A DNA stretch of 64,000 bases, taken from assembly GCA_010909165.1 (NCBI GenBank), contig MU008151.1, forward strand, positions 248,001 to 312,000. Reading direction: 5' to 3'. The translations under genes were made by a program, and so were the position numbers. Shown in pieces: positions 1-50,137 of this stretch (position 1 is the stretch's first letter; the number at the start of each line of letters is the position of its first letter). The stretch is from Anthoceros angustus. Lineage: Eukaryota > Plantae > Anthocerotophyta. Under the pieces are notes generated by a model. The model did not search any database and was not told where the DNA came from. It saw only the letters and a list, made by a program, of their open reading frames with translations.

Positions 1-54
1 TTAGAAAAGGTGTAATTTTAACAATAAATTAGTTTTACAGAGTTTACAAAAAAA

Positions 55-10537: not shown

Positions 10538-10639
10538 ACATGCCTGACAGATTCGAACTCTCGCAGACCAACCCATGTAGTTAAGTAAGCACAACAACAA
10601 CTTTATTTATGTCCACTAAACCTTTAACACCCCTTAACC
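10538..10639 (-). pseudogene. tRNA-Ser(GCT)-derived pseudogene, 3' portion, split again by a LINE tail
   Basis: - strand reads GGTTAAGGGGTG..[insert]..GTGCTTACTTAACTACATGGGTTGGTCTGCGAGAGTTCGAATCTGTCAGGC. This matches the plant tRNA-Ser(GCT) pattern GGTTAAGGCGTGTGCCTGCTAAGTACATGGG..GCGAGAGTTCGAATCTCTCAGGC. The anticodon is degenerate. Confidence 0.75.
10593..10619 (-). mobile_element. Extremely 5'-truncated LINE copy (3' tail only)
   Basis: ttagtggacataaataaagttgttgtt, identical to the LINE 3' end at 50047-50073. Confidence 0.85.
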
Positions 10640-13147
10640 AACAACAACAAAAACTTTATTTATGTCCACTAAGGATGGAAGAACCATCATGGGATGATAG
10701 TAACAGAAAAGAGGTTTAAAACCGAGTACACTTACGCACGTCGAACTAGAGAAGCGGTGCATGAGGGAAGCGTAAAAGAAGGCAAAGACTACAAGGAGTC
10801 CAACAAGGACTGCCAAGATCAAGAAGCTCGAGAGACATAGTCCAGAGCCTAGGAATGTGGAAAGAAAAAATCTGAGCGAGAAGCCGCACATTCAAAAGAA
10901 GAGAGTAACGAGACCGAATATCGGCATAGGGACAATAAAAGAGGAAGTGTGATTGATTCGGGATCCAAGGAGCAAAGCTTGCATCCTATCGTCTTGGGAG
11001 GGGTAGGCTTGAGCCAGCGGTCGGTCTCAATCCGGAGGTGGTGGGAGCTAACGAAATTGACCTATGAGTGTGCGGAGTTTGAAGGAAAGGTGGCAGGCGG
11101 GGTAGGAAATTTACGAGGGAGGATTAACTCGGAGCTCTCGTCTTTGTAAAAGCGGAGTCTAGAAGTGAGAGGGGAAAAGGAAAGAGGGGACCAGTGAGGC
11201 GAAGGTATCTTAATTTAAGGGCCTGCGAATGGAGTGGTTGGGGGATGTGAGAAAGGGGAGTTGGGAGGAGGGAGAGGGCCAAGGGGAGTCGAAAAGGTTC
11301 AAACTCGAATCTTCTAAGCGGTTGGCAGCTTGAGAAAGCCAAAGAAAAGAAGCTTGTGGGTCAAGATTGAGCCGAGCGGGAGGACCTAAAGGCAAGGAGG
11401 AGGTAAGGGGATCCAAAATGGGATTAGCAATATCAAGGAGGTGGAGGCGGTAAAGAAAGGATGAGAGACGAAAAAGGCCATCAAGTTCGAGGGAAAGGCT
11501 GCAAATTCGTAAAGGAGGATGGGTAATGGAGTCACGCTTACAAGCAATGTGAGCGGAGAAAGGAAGATTGAACCCTTTCCACCTTCGCCCAAGAAGAAGG
11601 GAAAGATCCGGCCCCAAATTTCAGCGCCATACAAGGCGGAGGGAATTACCATAGTGTTGAACCGCTCAAGATTGATATCACGAATTCATCACAGCAAAAC
11701 GGCGAAGAGCCCATCCCCTTGGTAGCGCGGGAGGAGGCGGAGGAGGTCCAGTTAAATTTAGGACCGAAAATAGTGATACCCAGATAAGTATAGGATCGAA
11801 CCATCTCCACCTTCTGACCATCATAATAAAATTTGCAATCACCCTTGTTATCCCGAGTGTTGAACCGCATAATCTTGGTCTTGCGCAGATTGACAAAGAG
11901 ACCCTTGGTTTTGCAAAAAAGGGATAAAACATCCAGTTGCAGGCCCTCTGGGGAATGAGGTAAAAGAACAATATTATCCGCATATAGGAGGATAGGAATA
12001 TTTTCCAGAAATAGCCGAGCACTAGGGTCGCCACATCGAAGAAGCCATTCCTCAAGCTCATCAATATACAATCCAAAGAGATTTGGGGACAAAGGGTCGC
12101 GAACGCCAAGTTGGATAGGGATCCGTGGGAAGACAAACCACGGGAGTCTTGATTCGAGCAAAGACCCTTTGTAGAGAAGGGTAGCAAGATGCCACAAATG
12201 AGGAGGCATCTTAAGAGATTGAAGTCTCAAACAACTTATCCCAAGGCATGAGTTGAAAGCACGCTTAAAGTCAACAAAACAACGATGACGTGCTTCTTCG
12301 GATGTCGAGCCCCTTCAACAATAGCCCGGAGGGTAAAAGATGATCCAAAGTATTCAGGCCGGGCAGAAACAGCCGAGCACCTTAGCCTCCTCAGAAGTAG
12401 TCAAGATCTCCAAACTAGAGCTAAAGATCTTAGCATAGATAGACTCCACGGTGATAAATCGGTAATTAGAAGGGAGATAAGGGTGACCTTGAGAATGGAG
12501 TGGATATCATTCTCACACCAAGGATCGAAACCGAAAGACAAAGCATCATTAAACAGAGAGGCAAGATGCGAGGAGAAGGAGGTAGAGTCAAGAACCGGAA
12601 TAAATCCCGGGGATACCATTAGGGTCGATGGTGTACCACGAGCTTGACAGCACGGGCAACTAGATTGGCGTGAAAACCCGAGACCGTGATCGAGGAATCA
12701 GGCAAGGAGGCAGAGGGATGTGGTAAAGACTATGAACATAGGAGAGGAGTTCAGAGTGGCTTTGAGAAGAATGGGTGAGCGGGTGTGGAATTCCTTCCAA
12801 AAGGCGTAGCCACCGGGGCGTTGACAGAGATAAGACGGTGTGTTCAGCTTGGATGAATTGGGACTTTTTCATGGAGATGAAGGCTTTGTAAGGCTTGTCA
12901 GTGGCTTTGTAAAGAGCAGAATGATGGGATCCGGGGAGGAGATTAAGTTGGCGCAAAGTGAGATGCAATTGAGAGCGCATGCGCTTACAATCCGCATTAA
13001 ACCAGGGATGGCGGGGGGTTGGTTTGCACGGGGAGGATGGCAAAATTTGAAAGGAAAAGTGGAGGGGGCAGAGGTGAGAACAGCAGAGGCGGAAGTGGCA
13101 GCGCGACAAGAAAAGGGGAGGGTGGGGGAATGGAAGCAAGGGAATGG
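10640..13147 (-). mobile_element. 5'-truncated LINE (RT region, C-terminus and (GTT)n tail), same family as 32942-50082
   Basis: RT motifs GVR..DPLSPNLFGLYID, ILLYADNIVL, GLFVNLRKTKIM and YTYLG. Reverse-complement match to about 45060-47195 plus 49671-50080. AATAAA followed by GTT repeats. Confidence 0.95.
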
Positions 13148-13167
13148 AACCACTCGGCCAAAGCTTC
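13148..13167 (-). pseudogene. tRNA-Ser 5' portion (acceptor 5' strand and A box), separated from its 3' half by the LINE
   Basis: - strand GAAGCTTTGGCCGAGTGGTT directly abuts the LINE 5' junction. Confidence 0.8.
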
Positions 13168-13650
13168 TACTTGCAAAAAAAGAGGTGAATCGTAAAGATG
13201 TAACGCCGATAACCATTGAGGAGCTCCACGGTGGGCTACCAAGTCCGTCCTCGAGGAGCTCCCACTGTGGCTACCAAGTCAGCCTCGGGAAAGCAAACAT
13301 GTTGGTTTCCACGAGCCCGCGGGATTCGCACCAGAGCGCAGCGATGGTGGGATTCGCAGCAATCGCGACAGACACGGGCACTAAACTCACGTGCACCTCC
13401 GGATGCTTGATTTCCGGAAAATGCCCAAGAATCAGCGAGGTCAGCCTGGCTTGCCATCGGTTCCCGCGCTGTAGCAGCAGAAACTCTGGCCGGCCGTGGA
13501 CCAGCCTTGCACCAACCTTGCGGCCTACTGTATATGATGCCAGTGTCCACCTCCACACCTCCATTCCACTGCACTGCTCCTCTCTTCCCACAGCCTTCCT
13601 TCCAGCACCAACCTCGCAGCTCCCTGAGGTCGACGCGGAGCCCATCCGAC

Positions 13651-16100: not shown

Positions 16101-16111
16101 GGCGACCAGCC

Positions 16112-16318
16112 TGGCTTAGGCCAAATGGACACACATTTATAAGAACGCCGTGATTAAGCATCCTGAGCTCAGATGGGTACTTAGATGGGGTGCCTAAAGG
16201 AGTGGATGCCCTTGGTGCAAGTAGCTTAGGCACACCATGGTACAAGTGGCTTAAGTACCAAGTCCCATGACGGAAATCCTTCCTTAGTGGACTGAAATAA
16301 AATTCTTCTTCTTCTTCT
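16112..16318 (+). mobile_element. Short non-LTR retroposon (SINE or LINE 3' end, second family) with a (TTC)n tail
   Basis: About 200 bp similar to 57204-57408. Ends ccttagtggactgaaataaaattcttcttcttcttc. Confidence 0.7.
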
Positions 16319-26930: not shown

Positions 26931-27502
26931 CCCAGTCTGCAACAACAGAAGAAGCCCTCCCTGCCTGGCATTTTTTTAAATATACTATACAGGAGTTTCG
27001 AAAAACATGAATAATGATTACAGCCCCTGCCAGCCGGTGCAGAAGATCCTTCGTCTGTCATGGTTGGGCCTGACAGCTGCTGCATACATTATGGTTGCTC
27101 CAGATGCACAGTGCGTGGGTTCCTGAACCACCAGCAAGTCGTGGAAAAGAGACGGAGATATTACTCTAGAATTGAAGCACGTACATGCTCAAATTTTGTG
27201 TGCCTGCGGCCTGCCTTCCCTGCTGCAGCCAAGGTGACGATGTCCAAATAATGTCAGTGATGTCGTGCCATCGTCACCAACTGTTGTGACAAAGAGTGTA
27301 GGACCTGGTTACGAAATCTTAATGTCTGGAGTCCTGGTGAGGTGTCTCCAGTTCTGGAACTTCAAACCAACGTGGCACGGCAGGGAATCAAATCCGATGC
27401 AAAAAGAAAACAGCGTCTCCAGTTCTGGACCTTCAGACCAACGCGGAACGGCAGGGAATCAACTCCGATGCAAAAAAGGACAGGTCGACTCGGGATTATT
27501 AG

Positions 27503-27628
27503 TGGAGATGCGGGGTCCCGATCCCCGTACCTTTCGCAGGCTAAGCGAGCGCTCTACAACAACAACAACAACTTTATTTATGTCCCGCTAAGGATGGAAG
27601 AACCATCGACCATCTGAGCTACATCCCA
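27503..27628 (-). pseudogene. tRNA-Ala(AGC) gene interrupted in the D-loop by a LINE tail
   Basis: - strand reads GGGATGTAGCTCAGATGGT [insert] GTAGAGCGCTCGCTTAGCCTGCGAAAGGTACGGGGATCGGGACCCCGCATCTCCA, close to canonical plant tRNA-Ala(AGC). Confidence 0.92.
27558..27607 (-). mobile_element. 50-bp 5'-truncated LINE copy
   Basis: gatggttcttccatccttagcgggacataaataaa(gtt)n matches the LINE 3' end at 50031-50082. Confidence 0.92.
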
Positions 27629-28970: not shown

Positions 28971-29019
28971 TTTCAGGGTGTATCAAAGAGGAATTAGACA
29001 TCAACACGCATACAACTCC

Positions 29020-31822: not shown

Positions 31823-32923
31823 AACATGATAATTTTTGAAGGGGTGAATAATCTCGAAGGGGGTTTTCCGCCAATAATCTCTGAAGGGGGTTTTTGATGG
31901 GCCCTAAAAGCAATTTTTGAAGGCATTAACAGCTCGAAAAAGGTGTCACCCAAGAAAGTTACTACTTTCCATCCAAAGAATGTTTGTGTCGAATGGTGGT
32001 CGTAAACTCGAACCTACGGAATAATGCAAAGTAGGAACGGTGAGGAAGGCCGTTCCTGCCGGGAAGGGACGGCTGTAAACTCAGTTTTGGGAGGAAAATA
32101 TGGTTTTGTTATAACACCACAAAAGCCACGGACATGGTATTTCCCTAACACAGTAACATCAGCAACCAAACTTACAACATTAACTCTGGGACCCCGGGAA
32201 AAAACGAGGTTTCAGTTTCACTCATCCCCAGAGTTCAATCCTTCGTCATCACTTGGTCCAGCTTCTCCTCCATTGTCATCATTATCTTCAGCGGCACTTT
32301 GACTCGCAGGTTGTATTAAGCCACGCAACTCGCAGAGCTTATCCCTTATCGCTTTTTGTCCATCGACATGATGTTTAGAGGAGTACCCTCTCGACCGACC
32401 AAATCTTGGCTCGATTTGAGATTTGCTTCTAAGGTTAGCCTTCATTCCAAGGTTGCTTCTAAGGTTAGCCTCAATTTTCGATGGAAGTGCCACGCATGTG
32501 GGTGCGTGGAAGGAGGGCCACAATGGGCACGCGAGGGCGGCGGCCGGCGCCTCGTTCGCTCCACCCGTCGGGCATAAGGCTGGTGGTGCGGGGAGGGAGG
32601 GTGCCGGCCGCCGCCGCCTCCCTACGCGCACCACTAGCCGTGATGCCCCACGGGTGGCGAGGAGGGAGGGAGGGTGCCGGCCGCCGCCGCCGCCTCCTTA
32701 TAGGCCGCCTTTAAGAAATGAATATGTAGTGGCTCAATTGGTTTGTAACTTGGGATTGTTGGTCTAGTGAACGAGCATCGGGCGGTGCGGGCGGGCGGTG
32801 CGGAGCGGGCGGTGCGGGCGGTGCGGAGCGGAGCGTGGAGGGAGGCGGCGGCGCCCGGCCGCCGCCGCCTCCTTATAGGTCTTTAAGAAATGAATATGTA
32901 GTGGCTCAATTGGTTTGTAACTT

Positions 32924-32941
32924 GGGATTGTTGGTCTAGTG
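32924..32941 (+). promoter_or_regulatory. 5' half (A box) of a tRNA-like Pol III unit split by the LINE; duplicated at 32752-32769
   Basis: GGGATTGTTGGTCTAGTG joined to the 3' flank gives TGGTCTAGTGG, the A box seen in tRNA-Pro/Gly/Glu. Confidence 0.6.
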
Positions 32942-33111
32942 AACGAGCAGGCGGGCGGTGCGGGCGGGCGGTGCGGGCGGTGCGTCCGCTACGCGGGAGC
33001 GGAGCGTGTGGAGGTTCGGTCGGGGCCTTCTGGTTTTCAGGCGGCGCCCGTGCTGCACGGGATTCGACGTACGGTGCGGTGGTGTGGCCGGGGCTTCTTT
33101 TAGGTCCTACG

Positions 33112-36100
33112 TGATAAAATAGCTTACTATTAGGGCACTCTTCACTAGGGCACCTAGGACTTAATAATTAATTTAGTCCTTAGGGCTCTAGGTAGTTTCT
33201 TTTAGTAGTTATTTAATTGGTTAGTTGTTACAACCACTTATTGGTTACAACTACCTTGCCTACATAAAGGCATGTACTTTCTATTATGAATGTAATGCAA
33301 CACATATTGCTAGAGCTTGTGTATGATTCTCATCATGGTATCGAGCACACTTGCTCTTTGTTTGCTTGTGCATCCTCATGCATCTAAGTAGCTTATCTAG
33401 GAGACACTTTCTAATCTAGCATTTGCCTAGATGGATTGTGTTTATCCTAGAATTGCTATCTTTGCATGCATTTTCTTTTATGCTAACATTTCTCTTCTAA
33501 CAATGCTTTTATGCACTAATTCTTTGTTCTTCCTCCATGGATTTGTGTTCCCTTAGAAGGAGAAGGCATAGAGTTAAGAAGAGAAGTAGTCCCGCAAGAC
33601 AACAAGAACAAATTAGGAGCCCAACACATAGAAGCAATAGAAGACAACAAGCTATAGAGGAGAGATAGTAGAAACCTCCTCTTGTATAGCAAACTTCATT
33701 GCATCTATTTTAATTTCTAAACCGGATCAAGGGAAGTTTATCAAGCTAGCTAGGCGTGATTTGCTAGAAGTTTTAGTCCAATTCACGTCAAGGCATTAGA
33801 ATTAGCTCTCCAACATATCCCAAATTTGAATCTGGTATTAGTACTCCTTTATCTTCTAGTCTGCAAGACAAAATAGCATAGAAACTCTTAGATTCAAGAA
33901 ATTGATAGTCAATTAGCAACTCTTAGAATCCAATCCTTTGATCTTAAGGAGAATTATCTGAATTAAGGACAAAATTGTCTATTCTCTCTAAGGTTGATAA
34001 TGCGCAGAGATTTGAGAGCATGCTATCATCATCCGAATCGACTATGATGCAAGAGAAGAGTTTCGCGTGCAATAAAGAAGATGAGATCAGTGAGGCCTAG
34101 TCCTCTAAATCACCTACAATGGCTGGAGTGATCAATAATGAAGAACAAACTGTTCCTAATTCCCATTGGGTAATGATAATGCTAACACTTCATTGCATTA
34201 TCATTATGGTGACGATTTCAAAGAGAAAGATAGATTCAATGGAAGGGATTATGACATCGGTCATTGAGAATGCGAGGAGCTTTGCGGCAAAGAGACCTTT
34301 GGGGCATCGTCGATGGATCAATTCCAAGACCACACGCCCGATTTGAACGTGAACTTCAACCTTCCTGGGACGCCAGGGACGAGAAGGCACAAGATTTATT
34401 GGTCAGTGGACTTTCTCAACATATGGTGAGACATGTCGCACACGCAAAGACCTCCAAGGATATGTGGACTCACCTTGCTCAATTATATTCATCTCAAGAT
34501 ATAATGAGTATTGTTGCAACCTCACGTAATTTCCGCAATCTCTCAATGAAGGAGTCCGACACCATCGAACATCATGTTAATGCATTTCGATTGGCACGAT
34601 CCCATTTGGAATCTTCAATGGCGTACCTATCTCGGAGATGGAGGCTTACGTCATTCTCTTATCTTCATTGCCACCTTCTTATAGGGCTTTCATTACAACT
34701 CAAAATGCGAATTCGCAATGTCGGAAAAGCTGCAGATGAAGATCCAAATGAAGAGCCGGACATCGTGTTTCCGAACTTATTGGAGCATTGCTACGGAGGA
34801 GGCAAGCGACGTCATCATCACTCCAGCCAACAAGCGGTGATGTATTCACAAAGGGTAGAGGAAGAGGACGAGGCGAGGCCGAGGTTCTACTTTCCGACCC
34901 CATATCCCGCACATACTTTCCATGATGGAGAGGCATCTTCTTCAACACCGCAAGAGGTAACAAGAAGGCGGGATTATATGTAATTGGTGCGAATCCCAAA
35001 TCACATGGAAAAGGATTGTCGTAAGAAGAAGAATGGGGAACCTCGCAAGGAGGCCCCACCTGGAGCTAACATTGCAGCGAAGAAACAATCTTCCTCAACT
35101 CCAGGTGCTCACTGTGCTTGGCTTCTTCCAAGCCCTCCAATACCTCATGGTACTTAGACGGAGCTACTTCACATATTTGTTACAACAGAAACTCTTTTGA
35201 GTCTTACTCACCCCAGGACATCGTCCTCCGGAGATGATCACAACCTACCCATTGCGGGTGTTGGTTCGATTGTATTCAAGTGTGATTCGTGGTTCTTCAT
35301 CTTCATCACGTCCTCCATGTTCCTTCAATGTGCAAGAATCTAGTATCACCGCAAGTCTTTGTCAAGAACACACTGCGGTGATCCTTTATGCGATAGTTGT
35401 CTTCTCTCTTTCATAAGTGATAGAAACTATACAATCTGCAGGCACTTTAGATGATGGTCTCTATAGATTGTCGACAAGTGGGAGCCACCCATTACGCTAA
35501 TGTTGCCATTCCAAACCATGACACCTACCCAAACCATGCTTTGGCATTGTCGCCTTGGTCATCCTAATAGTCAAAAATTAATCCAAATGTCTAAGGGAGC
35601 TTTATATAGAACCCTTGCCTTGCAAAGGTTGAACACCTACCTTGGTGCGAATCTTGTGTCCTCACTAAACGACATCAAGAGCCTTTCAAAATAAATCTCC
35701 ACAAAGGGCCAAGTCACCTTTAGAGATAGTGCACAGACATTTGTGGACCCTTGTCTACACCCTCCTTTAGTGGTAGTAGATATTTTTGACCTTCACGGAT
35801 GATTTCTCTCGTTTTGTCTTTTCCTACATCTTGAAAAACAAGAGTGATGCCTTTCACTTCTTCAAGGACTACATGAAATGGGTGAGAGACTTACGGATCA
35901 CAAACTCAAGACCTTACGTTCCGACAATGGTGGAGAGTTTACATCTGAATTTGAGGATTTTGTCGAGTGAAGGTATAGCTCAACAACTTACGATTGTCTA
36001 CACTCCTCAACAAAATGGCGTGGAGAACAAGAATCTACGCCTCCAAGAGATCACGGGTTGCTTATTGGTACAAGCTAAGTTATCTAAGGCTTATTGGGCG

Positions 36101-39100
36101 AGGCCCTCCTAAGAACCTATCTCATGAATCGATTGCCTACATCAGTTCAAGGTATGACTCCATATGAAGCATTCATTGGCAAGAAGCCTTCTATTGACCA
36201 CCTTGAATTTTTGGATCCCGCATATGTTTTTATTCCCAAAGCATTGCGTAAGAAGTTGGATCCCAAAGCTAAGTACACTTTTCATTGGCTACACAAGGTA
36301 TCAAAGGGTACAAATTGTTCAACCCTTCTACAAGGCAACTTTTATACGGAGTGTTACTTTTCATGAGTCTTACCTCTTTTCCCCAGTGGGAGCGATAGGC
36401 TTGGTCCTCCTCTTGATGAGACCATTGACCCTTCTTATTTTTGATGATCTGATTATTTCACTCCATTTCCCATTCTCGCTTCGTGTTCCTTTAGTTGAAC
36501 CTATTATGCGGAGGAGGAGGAGTTAGCATCTATTCCACAACTGGTACAACTCAACCGACGATGTTGACATCCCAGAGGCGCCATTGACACTCATGATGAT
36601 GAGTTTGATGACCCTCCGGAGGATGACATTGTGGAGCCAGCAGATCCTGTCGTTGATCCCGCTCCTGGATGATGCACTGCACAAAGGTACAACCTTAGAT
36701 CCCGACCTACTATCTCAGGTCCTGCAGGTTGGAAGGAACCTCCTTTAGGATACCTAGCTGTTTTTGATGATCCTATACCCCCTATATCACTTTATTCTCA
36801 AGCTGTCTACAAGGCAACTATAGACCCAGAAGAACCTCTTACCTTAAAACAAGCTTTCTCTTCTCCTGAAAAAGACTTATGGAAGGTAGCTGTAGATTCT
36901 GAATATAATTCCCTAGTTAATAACTCTACATGGGAATTGGTCAAACCACCTAGGGGTAGGAAGATAGTAACCAGCAAATGGGTATTCAAAATTAAAAGAA
37001 AAGGAGATGGTTCTATAGAAAGGTATAAGGCACGTCTAGTAGCCAGAGGTTTTACACAAATTCCTGGTCTAGATTACATACCTTGGGCCACTTATGCCCC
37101 AAGAGCCAAATTTGCCACACTTGAATGATATTTGCCTTATGTGCCCAACATGATCTTGAACTCCACATGATGGATGTTAAGACAAAGATATTTGTATGGC
37201 GCTGCAAGAGGAAATATACATGAGACAACCCGAGGGTTACTGAAGTCAAAGGCAAAGAAGATTGGGTATGCCGACTCATCAAAGGTTTGTATGGCCTTAA
37301 GCAAGCAAGAATTGGAACTTAACCATACATGTACAACTTATTGGGAGAGGATTTAAGCAAAGCCGGTGATGCTTGTATGTACATCCTAATATCCGCAATG
37401 ATATATTTTATCTTCTACTTTATGTTGATGATGTTTTTATGGCAACAAACTCCCTCACTCTCCTAGCGAAACTAAAGCATGGCTTAGGACTCTATTTGAG
37501 ATGTCCGATCTAGGAGAAATGACATATGCACTTGGTGTTAATATTATACGAAATAGAGGTAATAAGACTCTAAGTATAGTTCAAACCAAGTATATTAAGG
37601 AGAGTTTAGCTAAATTTGGACTTGAGGATGCAAAGCACCCACACCTTTTGCAAGTGGTGTTAGGCTTACCTCGGATATGAGTCCCAAAACAAATGAAGAA
37701 AAGCTAGAAATGTCAGTTCCATACCGACATCTTTGTTGGCACTCTAATATATTTATGCAATTTTACGAGACCGGATATATCTTTTGAAGTCGGCCTCGCT
37801 CACAATTCTTGGAGAACCACGGCGTGAGCCTTTGGATGTCAGCGTATATTCGATACCTTAAAGGCACTATGTACACAGGACTGATGTTCAAGCATACACC
37901 AGCTATCAACACATTAACTCTAACGGCATATGCTGATGCCGACTATGCTGGTGACCCCGACACACGAAAATCTGTATCAGGGTATGTATTACTCTTAGGA
38001 GGAGCACCAATATCCTGGTCAAGTAAGAAACAACCTACTATAGCTTTGTCAAGTACTGAATCTGAGTACAGGGTACTAACCTCAGTTTCTAAAGACATAG
38101 TGTGGTCCAGGTTAGTTTTGAGTGAACTTCACCATCCTCAACTTAAGCCTACATCTTTGTTTAGTGATAGCCAGGGTGCCATTGCACTTGCACGAAATCT
38201 GTTTTCATTCTAGAACTAAACATATAGCTGTTGAGTATCACTACATAAGGGAAAAGTTAGAAGATCAAACCATAAATATTAGTTATGTTCAAACTTTAGA
38301 CAATGCTGATTTATTAACAAAGTCATTGGGAATTGAGTTACATAGGAAACACATGAAATGTTTGGGTATAATGGACACACTGTCCAAACCTTTAACCTAA
38401 TACTCACCCTAGCAGCCTTAGGGCCGATTTAAGATAACCTTAAAATCTTAGCCCAAAAATTATTGTCTTACTATTTTTCTGAACATTTTTCTTCTTCTAT
38501 CTCAAAATAGCTTAGGTCATCCCTGCCTTCCTCTTCATAGACGGCCAACATAGAACCTGGAATATTTATATTAAAAATAAAAATAATATTTAAGCAGTAT
38601 TTATGTGATTAAAACAATAAATTCCCTTAGCACCAAAGGCACCTACGGAAAATATGTTTGATATGTCCTGGAAATTCCTCACATGGGAGACTTGCTATTT
38701 TTATCATGTGGATGGTAGTTTCCTCACATATATAGGAGTCCGGGACATCTCCCTTTTCACTTAAACCTAAGGTGAGTATGTATACTTTATTTTCCTGGTC
38801 ACCTTTTGGTAGAATTCCCGGCTTATAATAGCCCATGTTTTTGTCTTTAATACACTTAGGGAAACAAAATGTGTTTACAGCCGCATCAACTGCAGAAAAT
38901 TTATGCTAGGTTATTACTGATCCTAAAACTCATATAGAAATTAGGATGCTTAAATACTGGATAACCCTTATTTAATATATTGCACCTTTCTTTTCCAGCC
39001 CTTCCTTGTCATATCCTCCCCATGCCGTCTCCACCCATCTGCCTGCAAACGTCAGCCACACAAGTGTCAGCCTCTTATCCATCAAGCTGTTAGCATCCTT

Positions 39101-40339
39101 GTAATCCACTTGTGTCATAGCTTCTTCTTAGAAGCATAAGATGGGCAGCAATCTTTCCTACAAACACTTTTGGCAGAGGTGGGCATTTTGCGGCAGGAGC
39201 ATCATTCATTGAAGGGGGGAGGGGCACGTCCTCATCACCTAGGCTGCGCTTCCTCCCCCTTTGGTGAGCACATCCGGCAATTGCTTCACAAATGAAGACA
39301 TGGCGGAAATGAAGACATGGCGAAAATGAAGACGCAATCTTACACTTGGACTTGAGCTTTCCTCTCTGAGCGCGTCCCTGTGGGATCCTTAGGCATCTCG
39401 GTTCGCTTCATCCTCCGAGGATGAGGTCGATCAATGACAAATGCGAGATTTCTTTGAAAGGTGCGGAAGGACGAGGTCCGTGGAGGCGAGACTCTTCATC
39501 ACCAGCAGGACACGATGGATGCATCAGCAGTAGGGGCGCCTCCTTTTGTTTGGGCGCCAGTGCGCCCGTGGCGCCTCCTCCGTGGGCGCCTCCTCCGTGG
39601 GCGGAAGGCGCGCCGCCTACGGCGGCGCGGCGCGAGAGAGGGCGCGGGGCTCGGGACAGGCGCGATGGCGCCTCCTCCCGTGGGCGCCTCCTCCGTGGGC
39701 GGAAGGCGCGCCTTGCTGCGGGTAGCCACCCTCCCGCCATCGCCATCACCGCACATGTACCAACCACCAAGTTGTCGGGATCGCGTTCGTGAAGTTTGAG
39801 GAAGAAGGGTATTATCCATTATCCTTTTGATTTTCCTTTTCGGAAATTAGGTATTTTCTGGATTTTCCTCTATATATAAATCCGCTTAAATACTTTTAAT
39901 TAGTTTTAATTCCACCTATTTAAGTTGGGTTATTAGTTTCTCATCTCGTTCTCCTTAAGTGGGAGTTATTTTAATAGTGATTATTACTTTCAGTTTTACC
40001 TTAAGTTTTACTTTATGCCTTTAAGTAAAGTTTAGTTAGGGACTAGTTTTTACTAGACTAGTTTTCCTAGACCTCTTTTGGTCGAAAATCACCCCTAGTT
40101 CATAGTGAGTGGGAGTGATAAAATAGCTTACTATTAGGGCACTCTTCACTAGGGCACCTAGGACTTAATAATTAATTAGTCCTTAGGGCTCTAGGTAGTT
40201 TCTTTTAGTAGTTATTTTAATTGGTTAGTTGTTACAACCACTTATTGGTTACAACTACCTTGCCTACATAAAGGCATGTACTTTCTATTATGAATGTAAT
40301 GCAACACATATTGCTAGAGCTTGTGTATGATTCTCATCA
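33112..40339 (+). mobile_element. Complete Ty1/copia LTR retrotransposon
   Basis: 224-bp LTRs at 33112-33335 and 40116-40339 (TG..CA). PBS TGGTATCGAGC (tRNA-iMet type) at 33336. PPT AGTGAGTGGGAG. 5-bp TSD CTACG at 33107-11 and 40340-44. Confidence 0.97.
34119..38400 (+). pseudogene. copia gag-pol, frameshifted
   Basis: Gag LWGIVDGS..WDARDEKAQ..TSKDMW, zinc knuckle near 34980, protease WYLD, LWHCRLGHP, integrase FTDDFSR and TPQQNGV, RT KWVFKIK..YKARLVARGFTQ and YVDD, RNase H YADADYAGD..RKSVSGY. Confidence 0.95.
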
Positions 40340-43300
40340 CTACGTCGTGGGGGTTTTCGGCCTTGTGGGCTCCCCAGTCGTCTTTGTGCTGCCAGGCAAA
40401 GGTCGTAATTGGGCAACCTTATGGCGCTAATCTCTCTTCGGTGTTCTACTACGGTATTTGTGGCAAGTAATGGCTCCAGTGGATGGCCTTAAAGCATCCC
40501 TCTTGAATCTAAGGTGCAATATGACATGGCGGATCTGTTCTCGGGGTTCATAGTCTTGAGGCGGTGACTCTCGTTTTGGAGGACAAATACTTTCTTTCAT
40601 GGAGTCTCACATTATCTTGGAGGCTAGACTCAAAGATTTCTTTTGCCAAGCACTCGGATCTATCGATAGGTTTGAGGCCCTCCAGACGACCAATGATTCC
40701 CTCCTCAATGAATTACGGCAAACACGGCTGATGTTTTGAGCCTTGAATGGGAACACCTTATTGCGACTTCTCTAGACACTTTCGCATGGATATGGCCCCT
40801 TGACATCTTGATCTTGAGACATCTCTTAAGGAGCTCACAGGGAAGATTTACGGCGGGCTAATATGATCTCTAAGCACGTTGAGTGACCACAATTCCACAC
40901 TCTACTCCGGCTACCACGTTTGACCTACGGCCTTTTGGAAGGTTGAAATTATTGAAGACAAATTAACTTCTATCCGTCTTGGCATGTCCAAGAATGATGA
41001 GGTTATTCAAGAATTGCGGATAGGCCCCTTGCCCCTACGACCCGATCTTTTGCCGTCACGGCGCGAACTACGCTTTGCTACCATTTGAGTCCCGCGATCG
41101 CGATAAGCGATCTCGAAACCTCCGTATTACAGGATATCGGAACTACTCGAGAAAGTCTTGTAAGGGGTTTTGGTGATGTTATCAAGGTCGATGTTCGGTT
41201 CCAACACGCTTGGAGAGTGGGTAAGGACCATTCTCGATCCCCACTTATATTGTGCGTTTTTACTCTTGAGGCAGTTGCGTGTGTTACGTGCACGCACAAA
41301 CTTGAAAGGCCAAGATATATTTGTCAACCGACCTTACTCCTCTCCAATGGGAACGCAAGAAGCAATTGTTGCTTGGTAAGAAGGCAAAATCGGAGGGTAT
41401 GGTGGCTTATTTCATTGATGACGACCTAGTTATACGGAACCCAAGATCGCGCATGTCCGTAGGGATGCGGGGCCCGTGGCGCCTCCTCCGTGGGCGCCTC
41501 CTCCGTGGGCGGAAGGCGCGCCGCCTACGGCGGCGCGGCGCGAGAGAGGGCGCGGGGCTCGGGACAGGCGCGATGGCGCCTCCTCCCGTGGGCGCCTCCT
41601 CCGTGGGCGGATCGCGCCTTGCTGCGGGTAGCCACCCTCCCGCCATCGCCATCACCGCACATGTACCAACCACCAAGTTGTCGGGATCGCGTTCGTGAAG
41701 TTTGAGGAAGAAGGGTATTATCCATTATCCTTTTGATTTTCCTTTTCGGAAATTAGGTATTTTCTGGATTTTCCTCTATATATAAATCCGCTTAAATACT
41801 TTTAATTAGTTTTAATTCCACCTATTTAAGTTGAGTTATTAGTTTCTCATCTCGTTCTCCTTAAGTGGGAGTTATTTTAATAGTGATTATTACTTTCAGT
41901 TTTACCTTAAGTTTTACTTTATGCCTTTAAGTAAAGTTTAGTTAGGGACTAGTTTTTACTAGACTAGTTTTCCTAGACCTCTTTTGGTCGAAAATCACCC
42001 CTAGTTCATAGTGAGTGGGAGTGATAAAATAGCTTACTATTAGGGCACTCTTCACTAGGGCACCTAGGACTTAATAATTAATTAGTCCTTAGGGCTCTAG
42101 GTAGTTTCTTTTAGTAGTTATTTTAATTGGTTAGTTGTTACAACCACTTATTGGTTACAACTACCTTGCCTACATAAAGGCATGTACTTTCTATTATGAA
42201 TGTAATGCAACACATATTGCTAGAGCTTGTGTATGATTCTCATCACTACGTGGGGGTTTTCGGCCTTGTGGGCTCACTTTGGTCGTCTTTGTGAGCCACA
42301 GGCCAAAGTGCAGTAGTTGGGCAACTTTGCTTGGCGCTAATCTCTCTTCGGTGTTCTACTACGGTATTTGTGGCAGTAATGGCTCCAGTGGATGGCCTTA
42401 AAGCATCCCTCTTGAATCTAAGGTGCAATATGACATGGCAGATCTGTTCTCGAGGGTTCATAGTCTTGAGGCAGGTGACTCTCGTTTTGGAGGACAAATA
42501 CTTTCTTTCATGGAGTCTGTTACTATCTTGGAGGCTAGACTCAAAGATTTCTTTGCCAAGCACTCGGATCTATCTCGATAGGTTTGAGGCCCTCCGCATG
42601 ACCAATGATTCCTCCTCAATGAATTACGGCAAACACAGCTGATGTTTTGAGCCTTGAATGGGAACACCTTATTGCGACTTCTCTAGACACTTTCCGCATG
42701 GATATGACGCCCAAAGATGTCGATCTTGAGACATCTCTTAAGGAGCTCACGGGAAGATTTACGGCGGCTAATATGATCTCTAAGCACGTTGAGCTGACCA
42801 CAATTCCACACTCTACTCCGGCTACCACGTTTGACCTACCTGGCCTTTTGGAGAAGGTTGAAATTATTGTTGAAGACAAATTAACTTCTATCCGTACTGG
42901 CATGTCCAAGAATGATGAGGTTATTCAAGAATTGCAGGATAGGCCCCTTGCCCCTACGACCCGATCTTTTGCCGCCATCACGGCCGCGACGAACTCTGCC
43001 ACTGTTACTGCTACCATTTCAGAGTCCCGCGATCGCGATAAGCGATCTCGAAACCTCCGTATTACAGGGATATCGGGAACTACTCGAGAAAGTCTTGTAA
43101 GGGGTTTTGGTGATGTTATCAAGGTCGATGTTCGGTTCCAACACGCTTGGAGAGTGGGTAAGGACCATTCTCGATCCCCCACTTATATTGTGCGTTTTTT
43201 TACTCTTGAGGACGTTGCGTGTGTTACGTGCACGCACAAACTTGAAAGGCCAAGATATATTTGTCAACCGACCTTACTCCTCTCCAATGGGAACGCAAGA

Positions 43301-43418
43301 AGCAATTGTTGCTTGGTAAGAAGGCAAAATCGGAGGGTATGGTGGCTTATTTCATTGATGACGACCTAGTTATACGGAACCCAAGATCGCGCATGTCCGT
43401 AGGGATGCGGGGCCCGTG
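39564..43418 (+). repeat. Tandem duplication of about 1.9 kb (copia 3' end, LTR and LINE ORF1), creating a third LTR at 42022-42245
   Basis: GCCCGTG at 39564, 41472 and 43412 marks the unit boundaries. The third LTR is again followed by CTACG. Confidence 0.92.
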
Positions 43419-43419
43419 A
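42330..43419 (+). pseudogene. LINE ORF1 (coiled coil plus RRM/CTD-like), frameshifted; start uncertain
   Basis: ESRDRDKRSRNLRITGI..HAWRVGK..YIVRF..LKGQDIFV.TDLTPLQWERKKQL..AYFIDDDLVI lies directly upstream of the APE domain. Confidence 0.75.
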
Positions 43420-44054
43420 TGGCATCCTCACGGCTTCTTGGAATTGCAACGGATCTATCAATCTACACCTGGCGGAATGCTTGATCTCCTCACGGCCGGG
43501 ATTGCGGATATTGTGTTTCTATCGAGACTCATGAGCATCATACCCGCCCCTTAGGCCGTTCTCCGGATATTCATGTTTTCTACCTTTAGACACCATGTCT
43601 CCGAACTCTCCCAAGGCTTTGGGTATTGCTTGCTATTTTCGGAGTCCTTGACTCCTTTTATCTCCTTATTCGTCATGACGAGCTTAGCTCATCCTCCGGG
43701 TTCAATTGCCGCTCTTTTCTCTTCTCACCGTGACTTATATGTTGGCGTCACATTCCTCCAAGGTCCTCCAAATATGCTCGGGCGGTAATCCATATGCGGA
43801 TCTCTCGAGTCCATCTCCGAGTTTTCCCTATTGCCGATATTCTTCTCGTTGGGGACTTCAACGCTTGGACCTACACAACAAGCTATCTATGATTCCTTGA
43901 TTTCGACAAAATTTCTCACCGGATCCTGTCGACCTCGGGCTCGATCGGTCTTCCTCGATACCCATCCACTAAATTCCTATGGTGTTGCCCTTTACGCCTT
44001 GAATCCCACAACATGGTCATTTTCAACGGACTCCCGTTGGACAACAGTAATTCT

Positions 44055-45637
44055 TTCTTGACGATGGTTCCTCTTCTAGCGTTGGATTATGTTATTGGTG
44101 ACGTCGGCCTTCTCTCGCGTATTTCTAGGCTCTGGACTCTGGACTCTGGACTCCACATGTTTGGAGTCGACCATCTTCTTGATTGTTTTGATCTTTGTTC
44201 CTCCGCCCCCTCGGGATCCCCCGCCTCCCACTGCCTCTCCACCGATTCACCTTTCCACAAGACCTTGTACCCCAATTTTCCAGCTTGCTCCGCTCCTCCC
44301 TTGCTTCCATTCCCCCACCTCCCTTTTCTTGCTGCTACCGCCACTTCCGCTGCTCTAACCTCGCTCCACTTTTCCTTTCAAATTTTGCCATCCTCCCGTG
44401 CAAACCAACCCCCGCCATCCCCGGTTTGATGCGGATTAGCGCATGCGCTCTCAATTGCATCTCACTTTGCGCCAACTTAATCTCCTCCCGGATCCCATCA
44501 TTCCGCTCTTTACAAAGCCACCGTCAAGCCTTACAAAGCCTTCATCTCCATGAAAAGTCCCAATTCATCCAAGTGAACACACCGTCTTATCTCTGCTCAA
44601 CGTCCCGGTGGCTCGCCTTTTGGAAGGAATTCCACACCGCTCACCCATTCTTCTCAAAGCCACTCGAACTCCTCTCCTATGTTCATAGTCTTTACCACAT
44701 CCCTCCGCCTCCCCGCCTCGATTCCTCGATCCCGGTCTCGGGTTTTCACCGCCAATCTGTTGCCCGTGCTATCCGGAAGCTCAAGTGGTACGACTCGACC
44801 CTAATGGTATCCACGGGATTTATTCCGTTCTTGACTGATGGTTCCTCTTCTAGCGTTGGATTATGTTATTGGTGACGTCGGCCTTCTCTCGCGTATTTCT
44901 AGGCTCGGACTGGACTCCACATGTTTGGAGTCGACCATCTTCTTGATTGTTTTGATCTTTGTTCCTCCGCCCCCTCGGGATCCCCCGCCTCCCACTGCCT
45001 CTCCACCAGATTCACCTTTCCACAAGACCTTGTACCCCAATTTTCCAGCTTGCTCCGCTCCTCCCTTGCTTCCATTCCCCCACCTCCCTTTTCTTGCTGC
45101 TACCGCCACTTCCGCCTCTTCTAACCTCTGCCCGCTCCACTTTTCCTTTCAAATTTTGCCATCCTCCCCGTGCAAACCAACCCCCCCGCCATCCCTGGTT
45201 TGATGCGGATTGTAAGCGCATGCGCTCTCAATTGCATCTCACTTTGCGCCAACTTAATCTCCTCCCGGATCCCATCATTCCGCTCTTTACAAAGCCACTG
45301 TCAAGCCTTACAAAGCCTTCATCTCCATGAAAAGTCCCAATTCATCCAAGCTGAACACACCCGTCTTATCTCTCTGCTTCGAACGTCCCCCGGTGGCTCT
45401 GCCTTTTGGAAGGAATTCCACACCCGCTCACCCATTCTTCTCAAAGCCACTCCTGAACTCCTCTCCTATGTTCATAGTCTTTACCACATCCCCTCTGCCT
45501 CCCCGCCCCTGATTCCTCTGATCCTGGTCTCAGGTTTTTCACTGCCAATCTCGTTGCCCGTGCTATCCGGAAGCTCAGAAGTGGTACAGCTACTGACCCT
45601 AATGGTATCCCTGGGGATTTATTCCGGTTTGCTGACT
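44055..45637 (+). repeat. Tandem duplication of about 775 bp inside LINE ORF2
   Basis: ttcttgac..gatggttcctcttctagcgttggattatg occurs at about 44055 and again at about 44828. Confidence 0.9.
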
Positions 45638-47195
45638 CTACCTCCTTCTCCTCGCATCTTGCCTCTCTGTTTAATGATGCTTTGTCTTTCGGTTTCCCTG
45701 ATCCTTGGTGTGAGAATGATATCCACTCCATTCTCAAGGCTGGCGACCCTTATCTCCCTTCTAATTACCGATTTATCACCGTGGAGTCTATCTATGCTAA
45801 GATCTTTAGCTCTAGTTTGGAGATCTTGACTACTTCTGGCCGAGGAGGCTAAGGTGCGGGGCTGCTTTGCCGCCCCAGAATACTTTGGATCATCTTTTAC
45901 CCTCCGGCTATTGTTGAAGGGGCTCGACATCCGAAGAAGCACGTCTCGTTGTTTTGTTGACTTTAAGCGTGCTTTCAACTCGTGCCTTGGGATAAGTTGT
46001 TTGTGGACTTCAATCTCTTAAGATGCCTCCTCATTTGTGGCATCTGCTACCCTTCTCTACAAAGGGTCTTTGCTCGAATCAAGACTCCCGTGGTTTGTCT
46101 TCCCACGGATCCCTATCCAACTTGGCGCGAGGCGACCCTTTGTCCCCAAATCTCTTTGGGTTGTATATTGATGAGCTTGAGGAATGGCTTCTTCGATCCG
46201 CGACCGGTGCTCGGCTATTTCGAAAGTATTCCTATCCTCCTATATGGATGATATTGTTCTTTATCTCATTCATTCCGAGGGCTCGTGCAATCGGATGTTT
46301 TATCCCTTTTTGTAAAACCAAGGGTCTCTTTGTCAATCTGCAAGACCAAGATTATGCGGTTCAACACTCGGGATTACAAGGGTGATTGCAAATTTTATTA
46401 TGATGGTCGAGGTGGAGATGGTTCGATCCTATACTTATCTGGTATCACTATTTTCGGTCCTAAATTTAACTGGACCTCCTCTCGCCTCCCGCTACCAAGG
46501 GATGGGCTGCATGCTACCGTTCTTTTATCTGAGGATGAATCTTGGGATATCAATCTTGAGCGGTATTCAACACTATGGTAATTCCCTCCGCCTTGTATGG
46601 CGCTGAAATTTGGGGCCGGATCTTTCCCTTCTTCTTGGGCGAAGGTGGAAAGGGTTCAATCTTCCTTTCTCCGCTCACATTGCTTGTAAGCGTTCAACTC
46701 CATTACCCATCCTCCTTTCTCGAATTTGCAGCCTTTCCTCGAACTTGATGGCCTTTTTCGCCTCTCATCCTTTCTTTACCGCCTCCACCTCCTTGATATT
46801 GCTAATCCCATTTTGGATCCCCTTACCTCCTCCTTGCCTTTAGGTCCTCCCGCTCGCTCGGCTCAATCTTGACCCACAAGCTTCTTTTGCTGGCTTTCTC
46901 AAGCCGCCAACCGGCTTAGAAGATTCGAGTTTGAACCTTTTTCGACTCCTGCTTGGCCTCTCCTCCTCCCAACTCCCCTTTCTCACATCCCCCAACCACT
47001 CCATTCGCAGGCCCTTAAATTAAGATACCTTCGCCTCACGTGGTCCCTCTTTCCTTTTCCCCTCTCACTTCTAGACTCCGCTTTTACAAAGACGAGCTCC
47101 GAGTTAATCCTCCTCCGTAAATTTCCTACCCCGCCTGCCACCCCCTTTCCTTCAAACTCCGCACACTCATAGGTCAATTTCGTGTTAGCTCCCAC

Positions 47196-49667
47196 CCCTA
47201 CTAGAAATGGCAGCCCATGTTATAGTCATTGTTGCAATTTTATGTTACACTTTCAAATTGCAACAAGCTATGTAGGCTTGGTATTAAGTTTGACACTATT
47301 CCCTTCTCATTTTGTCACCATCTTAACACGAACCTGACTCTCTTCCTCATCACCTCACCCTCCTAAGTACACCTTCTCTCTCACAAGCATTGTTTATGAT
47401 TTCAAACATATACTATGCAAACCTGCTTATGTTACAGTCCTTTGTTACAATTTCATGTAACACTTTCCATTTGGAACACTCATGAAGTTAGTTGGCTTGG
47501 TGTTAAGTTTGTGATACTCTTCTCCACCTTCTCTCACCATCTTAACAACATGCAAGTGGTCTGTTGACCTTACACCTCACCATTAAGAGCTTAGCATTAA
47601 GTTTGTTGGCTTGGTGTTAAGTTTGTGATTTTCTTCTTCACCTTCTCTCACCATCTTAACAACCTGCCTTTGGTCTCTCCTTTCACCTCACACTCCTAGT
47701 TAATGCTCCAGTATGACACCCATTTTATAATTTTTCCCTCTTTGTGTTGCAACATGTGTTCCCCTCTCACGCTACTATTTTATTCTTCCCCTCTTGCTTT
47801 TCCTACATGACAGCAACCAAGAACTCTATCTCTCTCCCTGTGGTTGTCATTCTCTTTCCATTTTGCCTTTCCATTCTTGTTTTAACCTGATTATGTATAG
47901 TAGGATTCTAGATTATTTATATGTCTATCTATATATACGGTTTGTAGGCCCACTTGTTGTGTAAATTCCTATATATATATATATGACTGAAATACGTATT
48001 TATGTATGTATATATATGTATTTATACTTGTATATACTTGTAACCTAAACATAATATTATTTACCTATGTCTAAGTTCGTGGGTGCGAGGCTCACTCTAC
48101 GTTCGGAGGCAAGGAGGAGGAGGGGGAGAGGAGGAGGAGGAAGAGGAGGAGAGGAGGAAGGGGAGAGGAAGAGGAGGGAGAGGAGAGGAGGAGGAGGAGG
48201 AGGAGGAGGAGGAGGAGGAGGAGGAGAGGGAGGCGAGAGGAAGGAGGAGGAGGGAAGCGAAAGGACGGAGGGGAGATTATAAGGAGGAGGAGGGAAGATG
48301 GAAAGAAGAGGAGGAGGCAAGGAGGAGGAGAGGAGGAAGGGGAGAGGGGAGATGGGAAGGAGGAGGAGGGGAGAGGAAAGGAAGAGGAGGAGGCCCGTTC
48401 CATGCTGTGATTTCCTCAAATTTTCAGATGCGTAACTAGTGTGACACGCGTTGGTGAAGGGATGGTGGCGGGATCACGTGCGCAAAGCGGATCTTGTACT
48501 TGCAGAGCATTGCAAGGTCGCCAAGACTTGTTCCAATCGTGATTTCCTCTCAAATTTTCATGCGTAACTAGCTAGTGTGATTTGATGTTAGACAAGGCGA
48601 TAGGCAAGGAGGAAAAGGGGAGAGGATCCGAGGTAGAGGAGGAGGAGGAGGAGGAGGAGGAGGAGGAGGAGGAGAGGAGGGGAGATGGGAAGGAGGAGGA
48701 GGGGAGAGGAAGGAGGAGGGGAGATTATAAGGAGGAGGAGGAAGATGGAAAGAAGAGGAGCAAGAGGAGGGGAGAGGGGAGGAAGAGGAGGGGGAGATAG
48801 GAAGGAGGAGGAGGGGGAGAGGGAAAGGAAGAGGAGGAGGCCCGTTCCATGCTGTGATTTCCAGTCTCAAATTTTCAGCTAATGCGTAACCAGTGTGACA
48901 CGACGTTGGTGAAGGGATGGTGGCAGGATGCGCTGCAGTTGTCTAGGGGGAGAGAGAAGGAGGGAGGACTTGGAGCCAAACAACCCCATGCCGGCGCATA
49001 GCAAACATGGGTCCGCGTAGCACAAACTCGTAGGCACAAAAGGCACTGAGTGCTCAAGGACAAACTGGTAAACGTATCGTGGACGTGTACAAAGTATGTA
49101 CGTTATCCGTGTGACGTATATGCTTATTTTATACAAAATAGAATATGACCGTATATCACAGGAAATTACCGTATAGTATATGTCACCATGAACAATACAT
49201 GTATTTTACGAAGAATGTATTCGTACATGTATTTATGTATCTCAGATATTGCATATCGCATGAATACATGTATTTATGTATCTGTGTATTCATACGAGTA
49301 TCAGTGGGAACTACTAAGTAAAACTAGGTATTCCATAGGGTAATAGTAGTAAAAGGAGGAAGGTAGATGGGGAGGAGGTTTGGTACCAAGCCTCCAAAAG
49401 TGTTACAAGACTTGTCTTGTAACACTTTATATGTTGCAATCTTGTTGCAATCTTGAGAGAGGACAAAAGCACCTTTCACTTCATCTCAACATAATTGCAA
49501 CACCATTGCAACATGGTTGCAACAAACGCCTCAGTTTGGTTTCCAAGCCAAAGTGTAACAAGAGGCCCAAAAAGTGTTACATGACCCCAAAATTGCAACA
49601 TAAGTGTTACATCCAGGGGTCCAAATCTTAACATAAAGTGTAACATGGGCTGCCATTTCTAGTAGGG
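47196..49667. mobile_element. Non-autonomous CACTA/EnSpm-like element with CCCTA termini
   Basis: Perfect 27-bp TIR CCCTACTAGAAATGGCAGCCCATGTTA. 3-bp TSD CAC (47193-95 and 49668-70), confirmed by the empty site in the other LINE copy near 11040. Confidence 0.92.
48110..48870. repeat. Two related polypurine (GGA)n-rich tracts inside the CACTA-like element
   Basis: 48110-48395 and 48605-48842, each followed by cccgttccatgctgtgatttcc. The overlapping Pro/Glu/Gly ORFs are low-complexity artefacts. Confidence 0.92.
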
Positions 49668-50082
49668 CACCACCTCCGGATTGAGACCGACCGTTGGCTC
49701 AAGCCTACCCCTCCCCAAGACGATAGGATCTGCAAACTTTGCTCCTTGGATCACGAATCGAATCACACTTCCTCTTTATTGTCCCGCCTATGCGATATTC
49801 GGTCTCGTTACTCTCTTCTTTTGAATGTGCTTCTCACGCAGATTTTTCTCTTTCCACATTCCTAGGCTCTCTGGACTATGTCTCTCGAGCTTCTTGATCT
49901 TGGCGGTCCTTGTTGGACTCCTAGTAGTCTTTGCCTTCTTTTACGCTTCCCTCACAGTGTAACTGCTTCTAGTTCGACGACGTAAGTGTACTCGGTTTTA
50001 AACCTCTTTTCTGTACTATCTCTGTCCCATGATGGTTCTTCCATCCTTAGTGGACATAAATAAAGTTGTTGTTGTTGTTGTT

Positions 50083-50137
50083 TGGGAAAAAGGTTTAGTA
50101 ATGAATAGGTTCGGGGTTCAAAACCCATATCTTTTTT
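50083..50137 (+). promoter_or_regulatory. 3' half (B box and T-run) of the tRNA-like unit split by the LINE
   Basis: TGGGAAAAAGGTTTAGTAATGAATAGGTTCGGGGTTCAAAACCCATATCTTTTTT contains B-box-like GGTTCAAAACC followed by a T6 terminator. Confidence 0.6.

Follow-up and report, generated by a model that had tools for sequence, protein, structure and literature searches.

A candidate LINE family inserted within tRNA genes of the hornwort Anthoceros angustus

A stretch of 64,000 nt from the hornwort Anthoceros angustus (contig MU008151.1, positions 248,001 to 312,000; hereafter the window, to which all insertion counts and enrichment figures refer) contains four insertions of a long interspersed nuclear element (LINE) family whose copies end in CCTTAGTGGACATAAATAAA(GTT)n. 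We found that three of the four lie in genes derived from transfer RNA (tRNA), and that all four inserts are in the sense orientation relative to the tRNA or tRNA-like unit. A search with the 20-mer CCTTAGTGGACATAAATAAA, allowing at most three mismatches, returned five matches in the window against 0.01 expected by chance. Three of these carry a (GTT)n tail, at 10655-10674 (-), 10602-10621 (-) and 50045-50064 (+), and the remaining two, at 16282 (+) and 57382 (+), belong to a (TTC)n-tailed relative. The fourth (GTT)n-tailed copy, at 27558-27608 (-), has a 1-base indel in the 20-mer and was located via its tail. A search for more family 3' ends gave none in the window beyond these four, and a window scan with a profile of 30 full-length homologues confined the LINE coding remnants to two copies, A and B. 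In a metagenome scan the 3' 22-mer had a single match, an AT-rich bacterial sequence attributable to chance; protein searches with the open reading frame (ORF) of the reverse transcriptase (RT) gave no relative above about 59% identity and no other family copies among the proteins searched.

Two of the insertions interrupt one tRNA-Ser gene on the minus strand. Its 5' part (13148-13168) comprises the acceptor, the D-stem and the D-loop as far as GAGTGGTT, and its GGTT at 13151-13148 is the first copy of a target-site duplication (TSD). LINE copy A follows (10640-13147, -), such that the site reads ...GAAGCTTTGGCCGAGTGGTT / 2.5-kb copy A / GGTTAAGGGGTGT..., the duplicated bases being the D-loop GGTT. 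The piece of tRNA-Ser between the two inserts (10627-10639, -) consists of the second TSD copy and AAGGGGTGT. The second insert (10591-10626, -) is only 36 bp long, namely TAAAG, GTTTAGTGGACATAAATAAA and (GTT)3GT, and it stands 9 tRNA bases past the copy A site, or 13 bp if the duplicated GGTT is included. The 3' part of the gene (10539-10590, -) then supplies the anticodon loop, the long variable arm, the T-arm GAGAGTTCGAATCTGTC and the acceptor. With both inserts removed, an 84-nt class II cloverleaf was obtained at the 85-90% thresholds of ARAGORN only, with an anticodon loop of 8 nt (one extra base) and ACT where GCT is expected. The tRNA-Ser origin is clear because the GGCCGAGTGGTTAAGG and GCGAGAGTTCGAATC blocks are present, and to judge by its sequence the split gene is a decayed class II tRNA-Ser pseudogene.

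The third insertion lies in a tRNA-Ala(AGC) gene, again on the minus strand. The 5' part of this gene (27609-27628) ends in the D-loop ...CAGATGGT, and is followed by a LINE tail of 51 bp (27558-27608), made of the last 36 bases of the 3' untranslated region plus (GTT)5, and by the 3' part of the gene (27503-27557), with a T6 run about 30 bp downstream. The site reads ...GTGGGATGTAGCTCAGATGGT / 51-bp tail / GTAGAGCGCTCGCTTAGCCTGCGAAAGGTACGGGGATCGGGACCCCGCATCTCCA. The insert is placed directly after the D-loop G18-G19-T20, GT is common to tail and target, and the GT with which the 3' part starts (27557-27556) represents the tail's end or else a duplication of 2 bp. When rejoined, the site gives a near-canonical tRNA-Ala(AGC) at the default thresholds of ARAGORN, and the G3:U70 pair is retained. 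In addition to the downstream T6 run, the gene has an AT-rich stretch at -20 to -35; such an upstream stretch is expected of land-plant tRNA genes (PMC13578239). A decayed but uninterrupted tRNA-Ala-like paralogue, 80% identical to the rejoined gene, lies at 56908-56977 (-). The sequence TTGATTCCCTGCCG...CGTTGGT follows both the paralogue and the split tRNA-Ala, and is tandemly repeated at the split locus (27344-27500, -). The Ala unit, and hence the targets, may be part of a decayed array or of a repeated family derived from a tRNA, as in the head of a short interspersed nuclear element (SINE), which would leave the targeting argument unchanged.

The fourth insertion is that of copy B (32942-50082, +), for which the claimed 5' half of an RNA polymerase III (Pol III)-like unit is the A-box-like GGGATTGTTGGTCTAGTG at 32924-32941 (+). 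This flank contains TGGTCTAGTG at 32932-32941 and ends in TTGGTCTAGTG. The 3' flank (50083-50137, +) has a B-box-like GGTTCAAAACC at 50115-50125, 32 bases past the tail, and T6 at 50132-50137. The GGGATTGTTGGTCTAGTG stretch is repeated at 32752-32769 inside a 176-bp tandem duplication, and upstream of the junction the GC-rich module recurs once more in part. The true 5' end of copy B is uncertain, because the claimed junction lies in the tandem duplication. We regard this fourth case as weak and its flanks as not a credible tRNA.

A preliminary description of this DNA had reported the Ser flanks (GAGTGGTT / LINE / GGTTAAGG), the Ala flanks (GATGGT / insert / GTAGAG) and a second tail further into the same tRNA-Ser. 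All of these were found as described: the Ser site has its GGTT duplication, the rejoined Ala site is called as tRNA-Ala(AGC) by default ARAGORN, and the second tail is in the anticodon stem, 9 tRNA bases further on. The same description placed four of four insertions in tRNA or tRNA-like units. This stands for three of them (Ala and both in Ser); for the fourth, the quoted motifs are present but there is no stable tRNA call and the junction is duplicated. Of the three insertions that it put at the D-loop GG, those in Ala and of copy A in Ser are firm and the third is plausible, so that among the four events the insertion point is right after the D-loop GGT(T) in two, perhaps three, and in the anticodon stem in one. 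Every junction has GT or GGTT common to tail and target.

Copy A is 2.5 kb long and 5'-truncated just after the APE (apurinic endonuclease-like) domain, and retains a decayed RT, a C-terminal Cys-His region and the 3' hairpin, with a tail of GTTTTT(GTT)3 at 10654-10640. Copy B, which is 91-92% identical to copy A across 2.1 kb, is near full-length and heavily disrupted. On the plus strand it comprises a 5' region (32942-33112, then 40340 onward), an ORF1 of 240 aa (42647-43369), the APE motifs WNCNG, GDFNA and DH (about 43403-44300), the RT (45166-46745), a Cys-His region of the form CxxC...H...C that is common to the homologues (49644-49862), the 3' hairpin (50025-50057) and a (GTT)6 tail (50065-50082). 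The Pfam family RVT_1 matched the copy A ORF at 11646-12230 (E 1e-07), and a profile of 30 APE-RT-CCHC homologues aligns collinearly with the ORF2 pieces of copy B, from about profile position 95 to about 1066. The nearest full-length homologues carry Exo_endo_phos. The Pfam search of the decayed fragments did not detect an APE, and a PDB sequence search with the APE domain of a homologue gave spurious nanobody matches only. From the motifs and a weak profile match, the element appears to be a two-ORF LINE of the APE type that the preliminary description had proposed, and the RT and endonuclease of target-specific LINEs are both represented, by RVT_1, the collinear ORF2 and the APE motifs (with a weak APE match). 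In ORF1 an NLRITGI-type motif was spotted by eye, which suggests an RRM-type, L1-like protein. ORF1 had no homologues and no Pfam family, its Atlas neighbours were sub-threshold, and its single-sequence structure model was unusable (pLDDT, a per-residue confidence score, of 33).

The 3' end of the LINE folds as a two-tier hairpin, GUCC...GAUGG-loop-CCAUC...GGAC. The inner stem is GATGG/CCATC in the LINE and GACGG/CCGUC in the (TTC)n-tailed relatives, which is a compensatory change. The 3' end is therefore of the stringent type, and a short tandem repeat follows it. The LINE 3' motif TTAGTGGAC (50045-50057 and equivalents in the other copies) resembles the core TAGTGG of the target A box, and the resemblance may be mimicry, homology-guided priming or coincidence.

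The (TTC)n-tailed relatives, at 16112-16316 (+) and 57208-57408 (+), are each about 200 bp long, and neither is in a tRNA; the preliminary description had left them uncounted. They share with the LINE only the last 35 bases or so (hairpin plus TTAGTGGAC; the compensatory change is seen in the hairpin of the second), and both begin at the identical base (TGGCTTAGGCC...). They resemble a SINE-like partner, or else a sister family. Because they stand outside tRNAs, target choice tracks the subfamily and its tail. A tRNA-like 3' region, GGGTTCAAATCCCGATC..., was seen at relaxed ARAGORN thresholds only, at 57547-57616 (-), 140 bp downstream of the second of these elements.

The closest proteins to the LINE are ORF2s of Chlorella LINEs (41% identity, automatically named LINE-1 ORF2), together with algal and metagenomic contigs. 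Among solved structures, L1 matched at E 5e-24 and R2 at 1e-20, and these structures separate only L1 from R2. A hairpin and short repeats likewise close the readable relatives, the repeats being (ACCTTTG)n in Chlorella and (TAATCG)n and (GTATCTT)n in two others. In the Chlorella vulgaris assembly GCA_037855405.1, 5'-truncated copies of the relative, 98-99% identical, are stacked head to tail or nested in one another. This suggests insertion targeted to the element itself or to its tail repeat, and is consistent with tail-guided targeting in the lineage. The gene models of that assembly splice several stacked LINE copies together.

No tRNA gene was found in the intact window by ARAGORN or Rfam, even at E<=10. 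The tRNA-like DNA, counted as the split genes, the paralogue at 56908-56977 and the stretch at 57547-57616, amounts to 373 bases, or 0.58% of the window, which bears out the earlier statement that it makes up well under 1%. Under uniform insertion, the probability that at least three of four insertions fall in tRNA-like DNA is 8e-7. When only TGGT or GGTT sites are allowed, of which 1.5-1.9% of the window total are inside tRNA-like DNA, the probability becomes 1.5e-5 to 2.5e-5. The motif AG(N)TGGT occurs at 73 sites in the window; 3 of the 73 are in tRNA-like DNA, and two of those three were hit. In three of the four insertions the observation is real, and inside this window it goes far past what chance would give. 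We consider, with good confidence, that targeting of tRNAs is probably right as a phenomenon.

We propose, with a probability of roughly 0.6, that an APE-type two-ORF LINE family integrated preferentially within tRNA genes or tRNA-derived Pol III units, in the sense orientation, by the following mechanism. The insertions, junctions, orientation, enrichment, domain content and 3' hairpin with its one compensatory change are present in the window, and beyond them we infer the strand and position of the nick, the pairing of tail and target and the source of the tRNA specificity. The endonuclease of the element would nick the antisense strand across from G18-G19-T20(-T), the D-loop bases of the A box, and the freed ...AC or ...AAC(C)-3' end would pair with the LINE RNA at its (GUU)n tail; the RT may hold this RNA via the conserved two-tier hairpin just upstream of the tail. 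Target-primed reverse transcription would come next, and its frequent early abort would leave tails such as those of 36 bp and 51 bp. A second nick, 2-4 bp off, would produce the GT or GGTT duplication.

Because the isoacceptors differ (Ala and Ser), the recognised feature should be one that is common to tRNA genes, namely the A-box sequence, possibly with the B box or TFIIIC. It is plausible that the A box is this feature. The claim of the preliminary description, that the LINE recognises the A box of different isoacceptors, holds in that Ala and Ser were both hit, twice at the same D-loop position; its A-box reading is less secure, since AG(N)TGGT alone is far too common, and therefore a longer or a non-sequence determinant is needed for the tRNA bias. 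From the insertion point to the first T-loop base there are 33 nt in Ala, 33 nt at the second Ser insert, 34 nt in the fourth unit and 42 nt at the copy A site in Ser. The class II tRNA-Ser was entered both at the D-loop and at a site 33 nt from the B box. We can only tentatively suggest, below even odds, that a land-plant APE-type LINE reads the internal Pol III promoter through the A box, the distance of about 33 nt to the B box or TFIIIC, or both, that any tRNA or tRNA-like unit would serve, and that the repeat tail acts as a guide for priming.

Several observations weigh against the proposed targeting. The sample consists of four events, two of which share the tRNA-Ser gene and are possibly not independent, and a conservative count by locus (2 of 3, p = 0.019) gives a probability of about 1e-3. 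The window was chosen for its pattern, so that the P-values are post hoc, and about 1,700 windows of the genome were read. The second Ser insert is in the 5' strand of the anticodon stem, at GGTGT / GCTTAC, and not at the A box, and the tRNA-Ala-like paralogue at 56908-56977 bears the same AGATGGT and yet was not hit. At the fourth site a tandem duplication (32657-32837 / 32833-33008) takes in the claimed 5' junction and about 90 bp to either side of it, and the unit was rejected as a tRNA: ARAGORN calls it only at thresholds of 85% or below, the call shifts with the junction chosen, and the 85% threshold gives 15 mostly spurious calls in the window. The collinear profile match of the APE domain is weak (independent E-value 0.011), and is read together with the motifs. 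Finally, the family is extinct; every copy is dead, and activity cannot be inferred.

Among other explanations, the one that survives best is that the distances given above reflect the Pol III machinery. The integration complex would be tethered to TFIIIC at the B box (or to TFIIIB or Pol III) and would nick at a fixed distance upstream, where the nearest GT would serve for tail pairing and the A-box sequence itself would go unread. This would cover insertion into more than one isoacceptor and into a unit that is Pol III-like without being a tRNA, and it matches the 33, 33 and 34 nt to the T-loop in three cases, including the second Ser insert, which is off the A box. Tethering to Pol III factors is established for yeast Ty3. 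Protein tethering of this kind is also known for Dictyostelium TRE5-A (PMC3706591). However, the known tethered elements insert outside the gene and not within it, and copy A in tRNA-Ser stands at 42 nt, yet at the same D-loop sequence as the insert in Ala. The Ser gene has 6 GT sites, so that the coincidence at 33 nt has a chance of about 1 in 6 and is a hint from four events. We consider this explanation unlikely.

Still less probable is that the family has no specificity for tRNAs, and that it inserts at any short (T)GGT or GTT that permits tail pairing, the tRNA hits being due to coincidence and the selection of the window. The GT or GGTT shared with the tail at all junctions would be expected in that case, and the post hoc choice of the window and the doubtful fourth case also speak for it. 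Nevertheless, with only 1.5-1.9% of the TGGT and GGTT sites in tRNA-like DNA and a probability of 1.5-2.5e-5 for three of four, such a coincidence would be rare, and it would also have to produce two hits at one and the same tRNA position and four of four in the sense orientation. We give very little credence to capture without the endonuclease, in which LINE cDNA patches pre-existing nicks at tRNA genes that are fragile or prone to R-loops and heavily transcribed; the inserts of 36 and 51 bp, very short and abortive, do resemble repair events, as do duplications that are small or ambiguous. However, a directed nick is suggested by the clean GGTT duplicated at copy A, by the D-loop position that two different tRNAs share exactly and by an orientation that never varies, and the family has APE motifs. 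An origin as chimeras by template switching, as in U6-L1 chimeras, was rejected because, past the insert, the interrupted tRNA continues with its next base, and whole genes result when the sites are rejoined.

Copy B was disrupted by several later events. A Ty1/copia element, which is not part of the LINE, is nested in it at 33113-40339 (+), with 225-bp TG...CA long terminal repeats (LTRs), a CTACG duplication and gag, integrase (INT) and RNase H ORFs. It has a tRNA-Met-like primer site, TGGTATCGAGC, and an unusually long 1.7 kb between RNase H and the 3' LTR, and this LTR is present a third time (42021-42245) via a 1.9-kb tandem duplication (39564-41478 / 41472-43418). A non-autonomous transposon of 2.47 kb is nested at 47199-49668 (+), with perfect terminal inverted repeats (TIRs) of 27 bp, CCCTACTAGAAATGGCAGCCCATGTTA, and a 3-bp CAC duplication; it is full of purine-rich tandem repeats (48105-48929), and copy A retains the empty site at about 11040. 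Copy B contains two internal tandem duplications. One of 0.8 kb (92%) in ORF2, at 44055-44838 / 44828-45635, spans the truncation point of copy A, and may be a genuine duplication or an assembly artefact. Elsewhere in the window, positions 1-3548 and 9428-5886 form a 3.5-kb inverted duplication at 97% identity, which holds a hairpin that matches the Rfam family MIR1858 below threshold (4382-4591; 109 bits, the gathering score being 137).

A search of the full-text literature returned no report of a plant LINE that targets tRNA genes, although subscription journals and Repbase Reports are largely outside its coverage and a prior description is possible. The family is probably a target-specific LINE of a previously unreported sort, being from a land plant, of APE type and with an intragenic tRNA target. 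If it does read the internal Pol III promoter, it would be the first pan-isoacceptor, intragenic tRNA-targeting LINE. With a plant APE-type LINE that hits one D-loop site across several tRNA families, LINE targeting would gain a new target class and a new host lineage, and there would be a natural case in which to ask how a Pol III promoter is read by an APE nuclease or by its partners. Such an element might also account for tRNA pseudogenes of hornworts. Interest in target-specific LINEs extends to their use as safe-harbour insertion tools (PMC11371274).

Land plants are reported to hold only L1 LINEs, with poly(A), and RTE LINEs, both regarded as non-specific (PMC3472496). Land-plant L1 elements have a poly(A) tail and relaxed 3' recognition, and the 3' end here is a hairpin plus (GTT)n. 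In its 3' end the hornwort LINE is closer to the plant RTE and green-algal L1 LINEs, which have stringent 3' hairpins shared with SINEs and microhomology between tail and TSD (PMC3472496; PMC6007223). A (TTG)n tail, equivalent to (GTT)n, is found in all plant RTE families listed by Ohshima 2012 (PMC3472496), the 3' microsatellite of RTE LINEs correlates with the first TSD base (Nishiyama & Ohshima 2018, PMC6007223), and green-algal L1 families end in short repeats and not in poly(A) (PMC3472496). However, RTE elements have a single ORF and no C-terminal Cys-His motif, and none is reported to target tRNA genes; while the tail fits, the upstream ORF of 240 aa and the C-terminal Cys-His region of the hornwort LINE speak against RTE.

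Dictyostelium TRE5-A and TRE3 and yeast Ty3 and Ty1 are likewise retrotransposons with tRNA genes as safe havens. The Ty elements are LTR elements. The TRE and Ty elements insert at a distance upstream or downstream via contacts with Pol III factors, and not at a fixed intragenic site (PMC3706591), and TRE5-A and Ty3 keep a set distance outside the tRNA coding region, whereas the insertions described here are intragenic. Dada DNA transposons insert at specific sites within tRNA and snRNA genes (Kojima & Jurka 2013, PMC3706591; PMC8869645). They are not retroelements, and have a DDE transposase, TIRs and duplications of 6-7 bp, whereas the hornwort element encodes an RT, is tailed, has no TIRs and makes duplications of 2-4 bp; the intragenic tRNA target is shared.

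Among APE-type LINEs, Tx1 and R1 are the only clades said to include site-specific members (PMC6007223). The site-specific LINEs of the Tx1 clade include Tx1L, Keno, Mutsu and Dewa (Kojima & Fujiwara 2004, as cited in PMC3706591 and PMC6007223). These belong to the L1 group, have two ORFs, are of APE type and recognise specific sequences in microsatellites or small-RNA loci. The target of Dewa is the spacer of tRNA-Leu arrays and not the gene (PMC3706591); in contrast, the hornwort LINE is inside genes, and its nearest proteins are green-algal LINE ORF2s. The background on targeted elements in the preliminary description was mostly right, with the correction that tRNA-gene-specific LINEs already exist, with a restriction-like endonuclease (RLE; PMC4640811). 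NeSL-1_TV in tRNA-Pro of Trichomonas, and LIN15_SM in tRNA-Arg and LIN25_SM in tRNA-Glu of Schmidtea, are RLE-type LINEs within tRNA genes (Kojima & Jurka 2015, PMC4640811). Like these NeSL-related LINEs, the hornwort element is a non-LTR retrotransposon inside tRNA genes. However, the NeSL-related LINEs have a C-terminal RLE, no APE and one tRNA species each, whereas the hornwort LINE has APE-type motifs N-terminal of the RT, is found in at least two isoacceptor families and belongs to a land plant.

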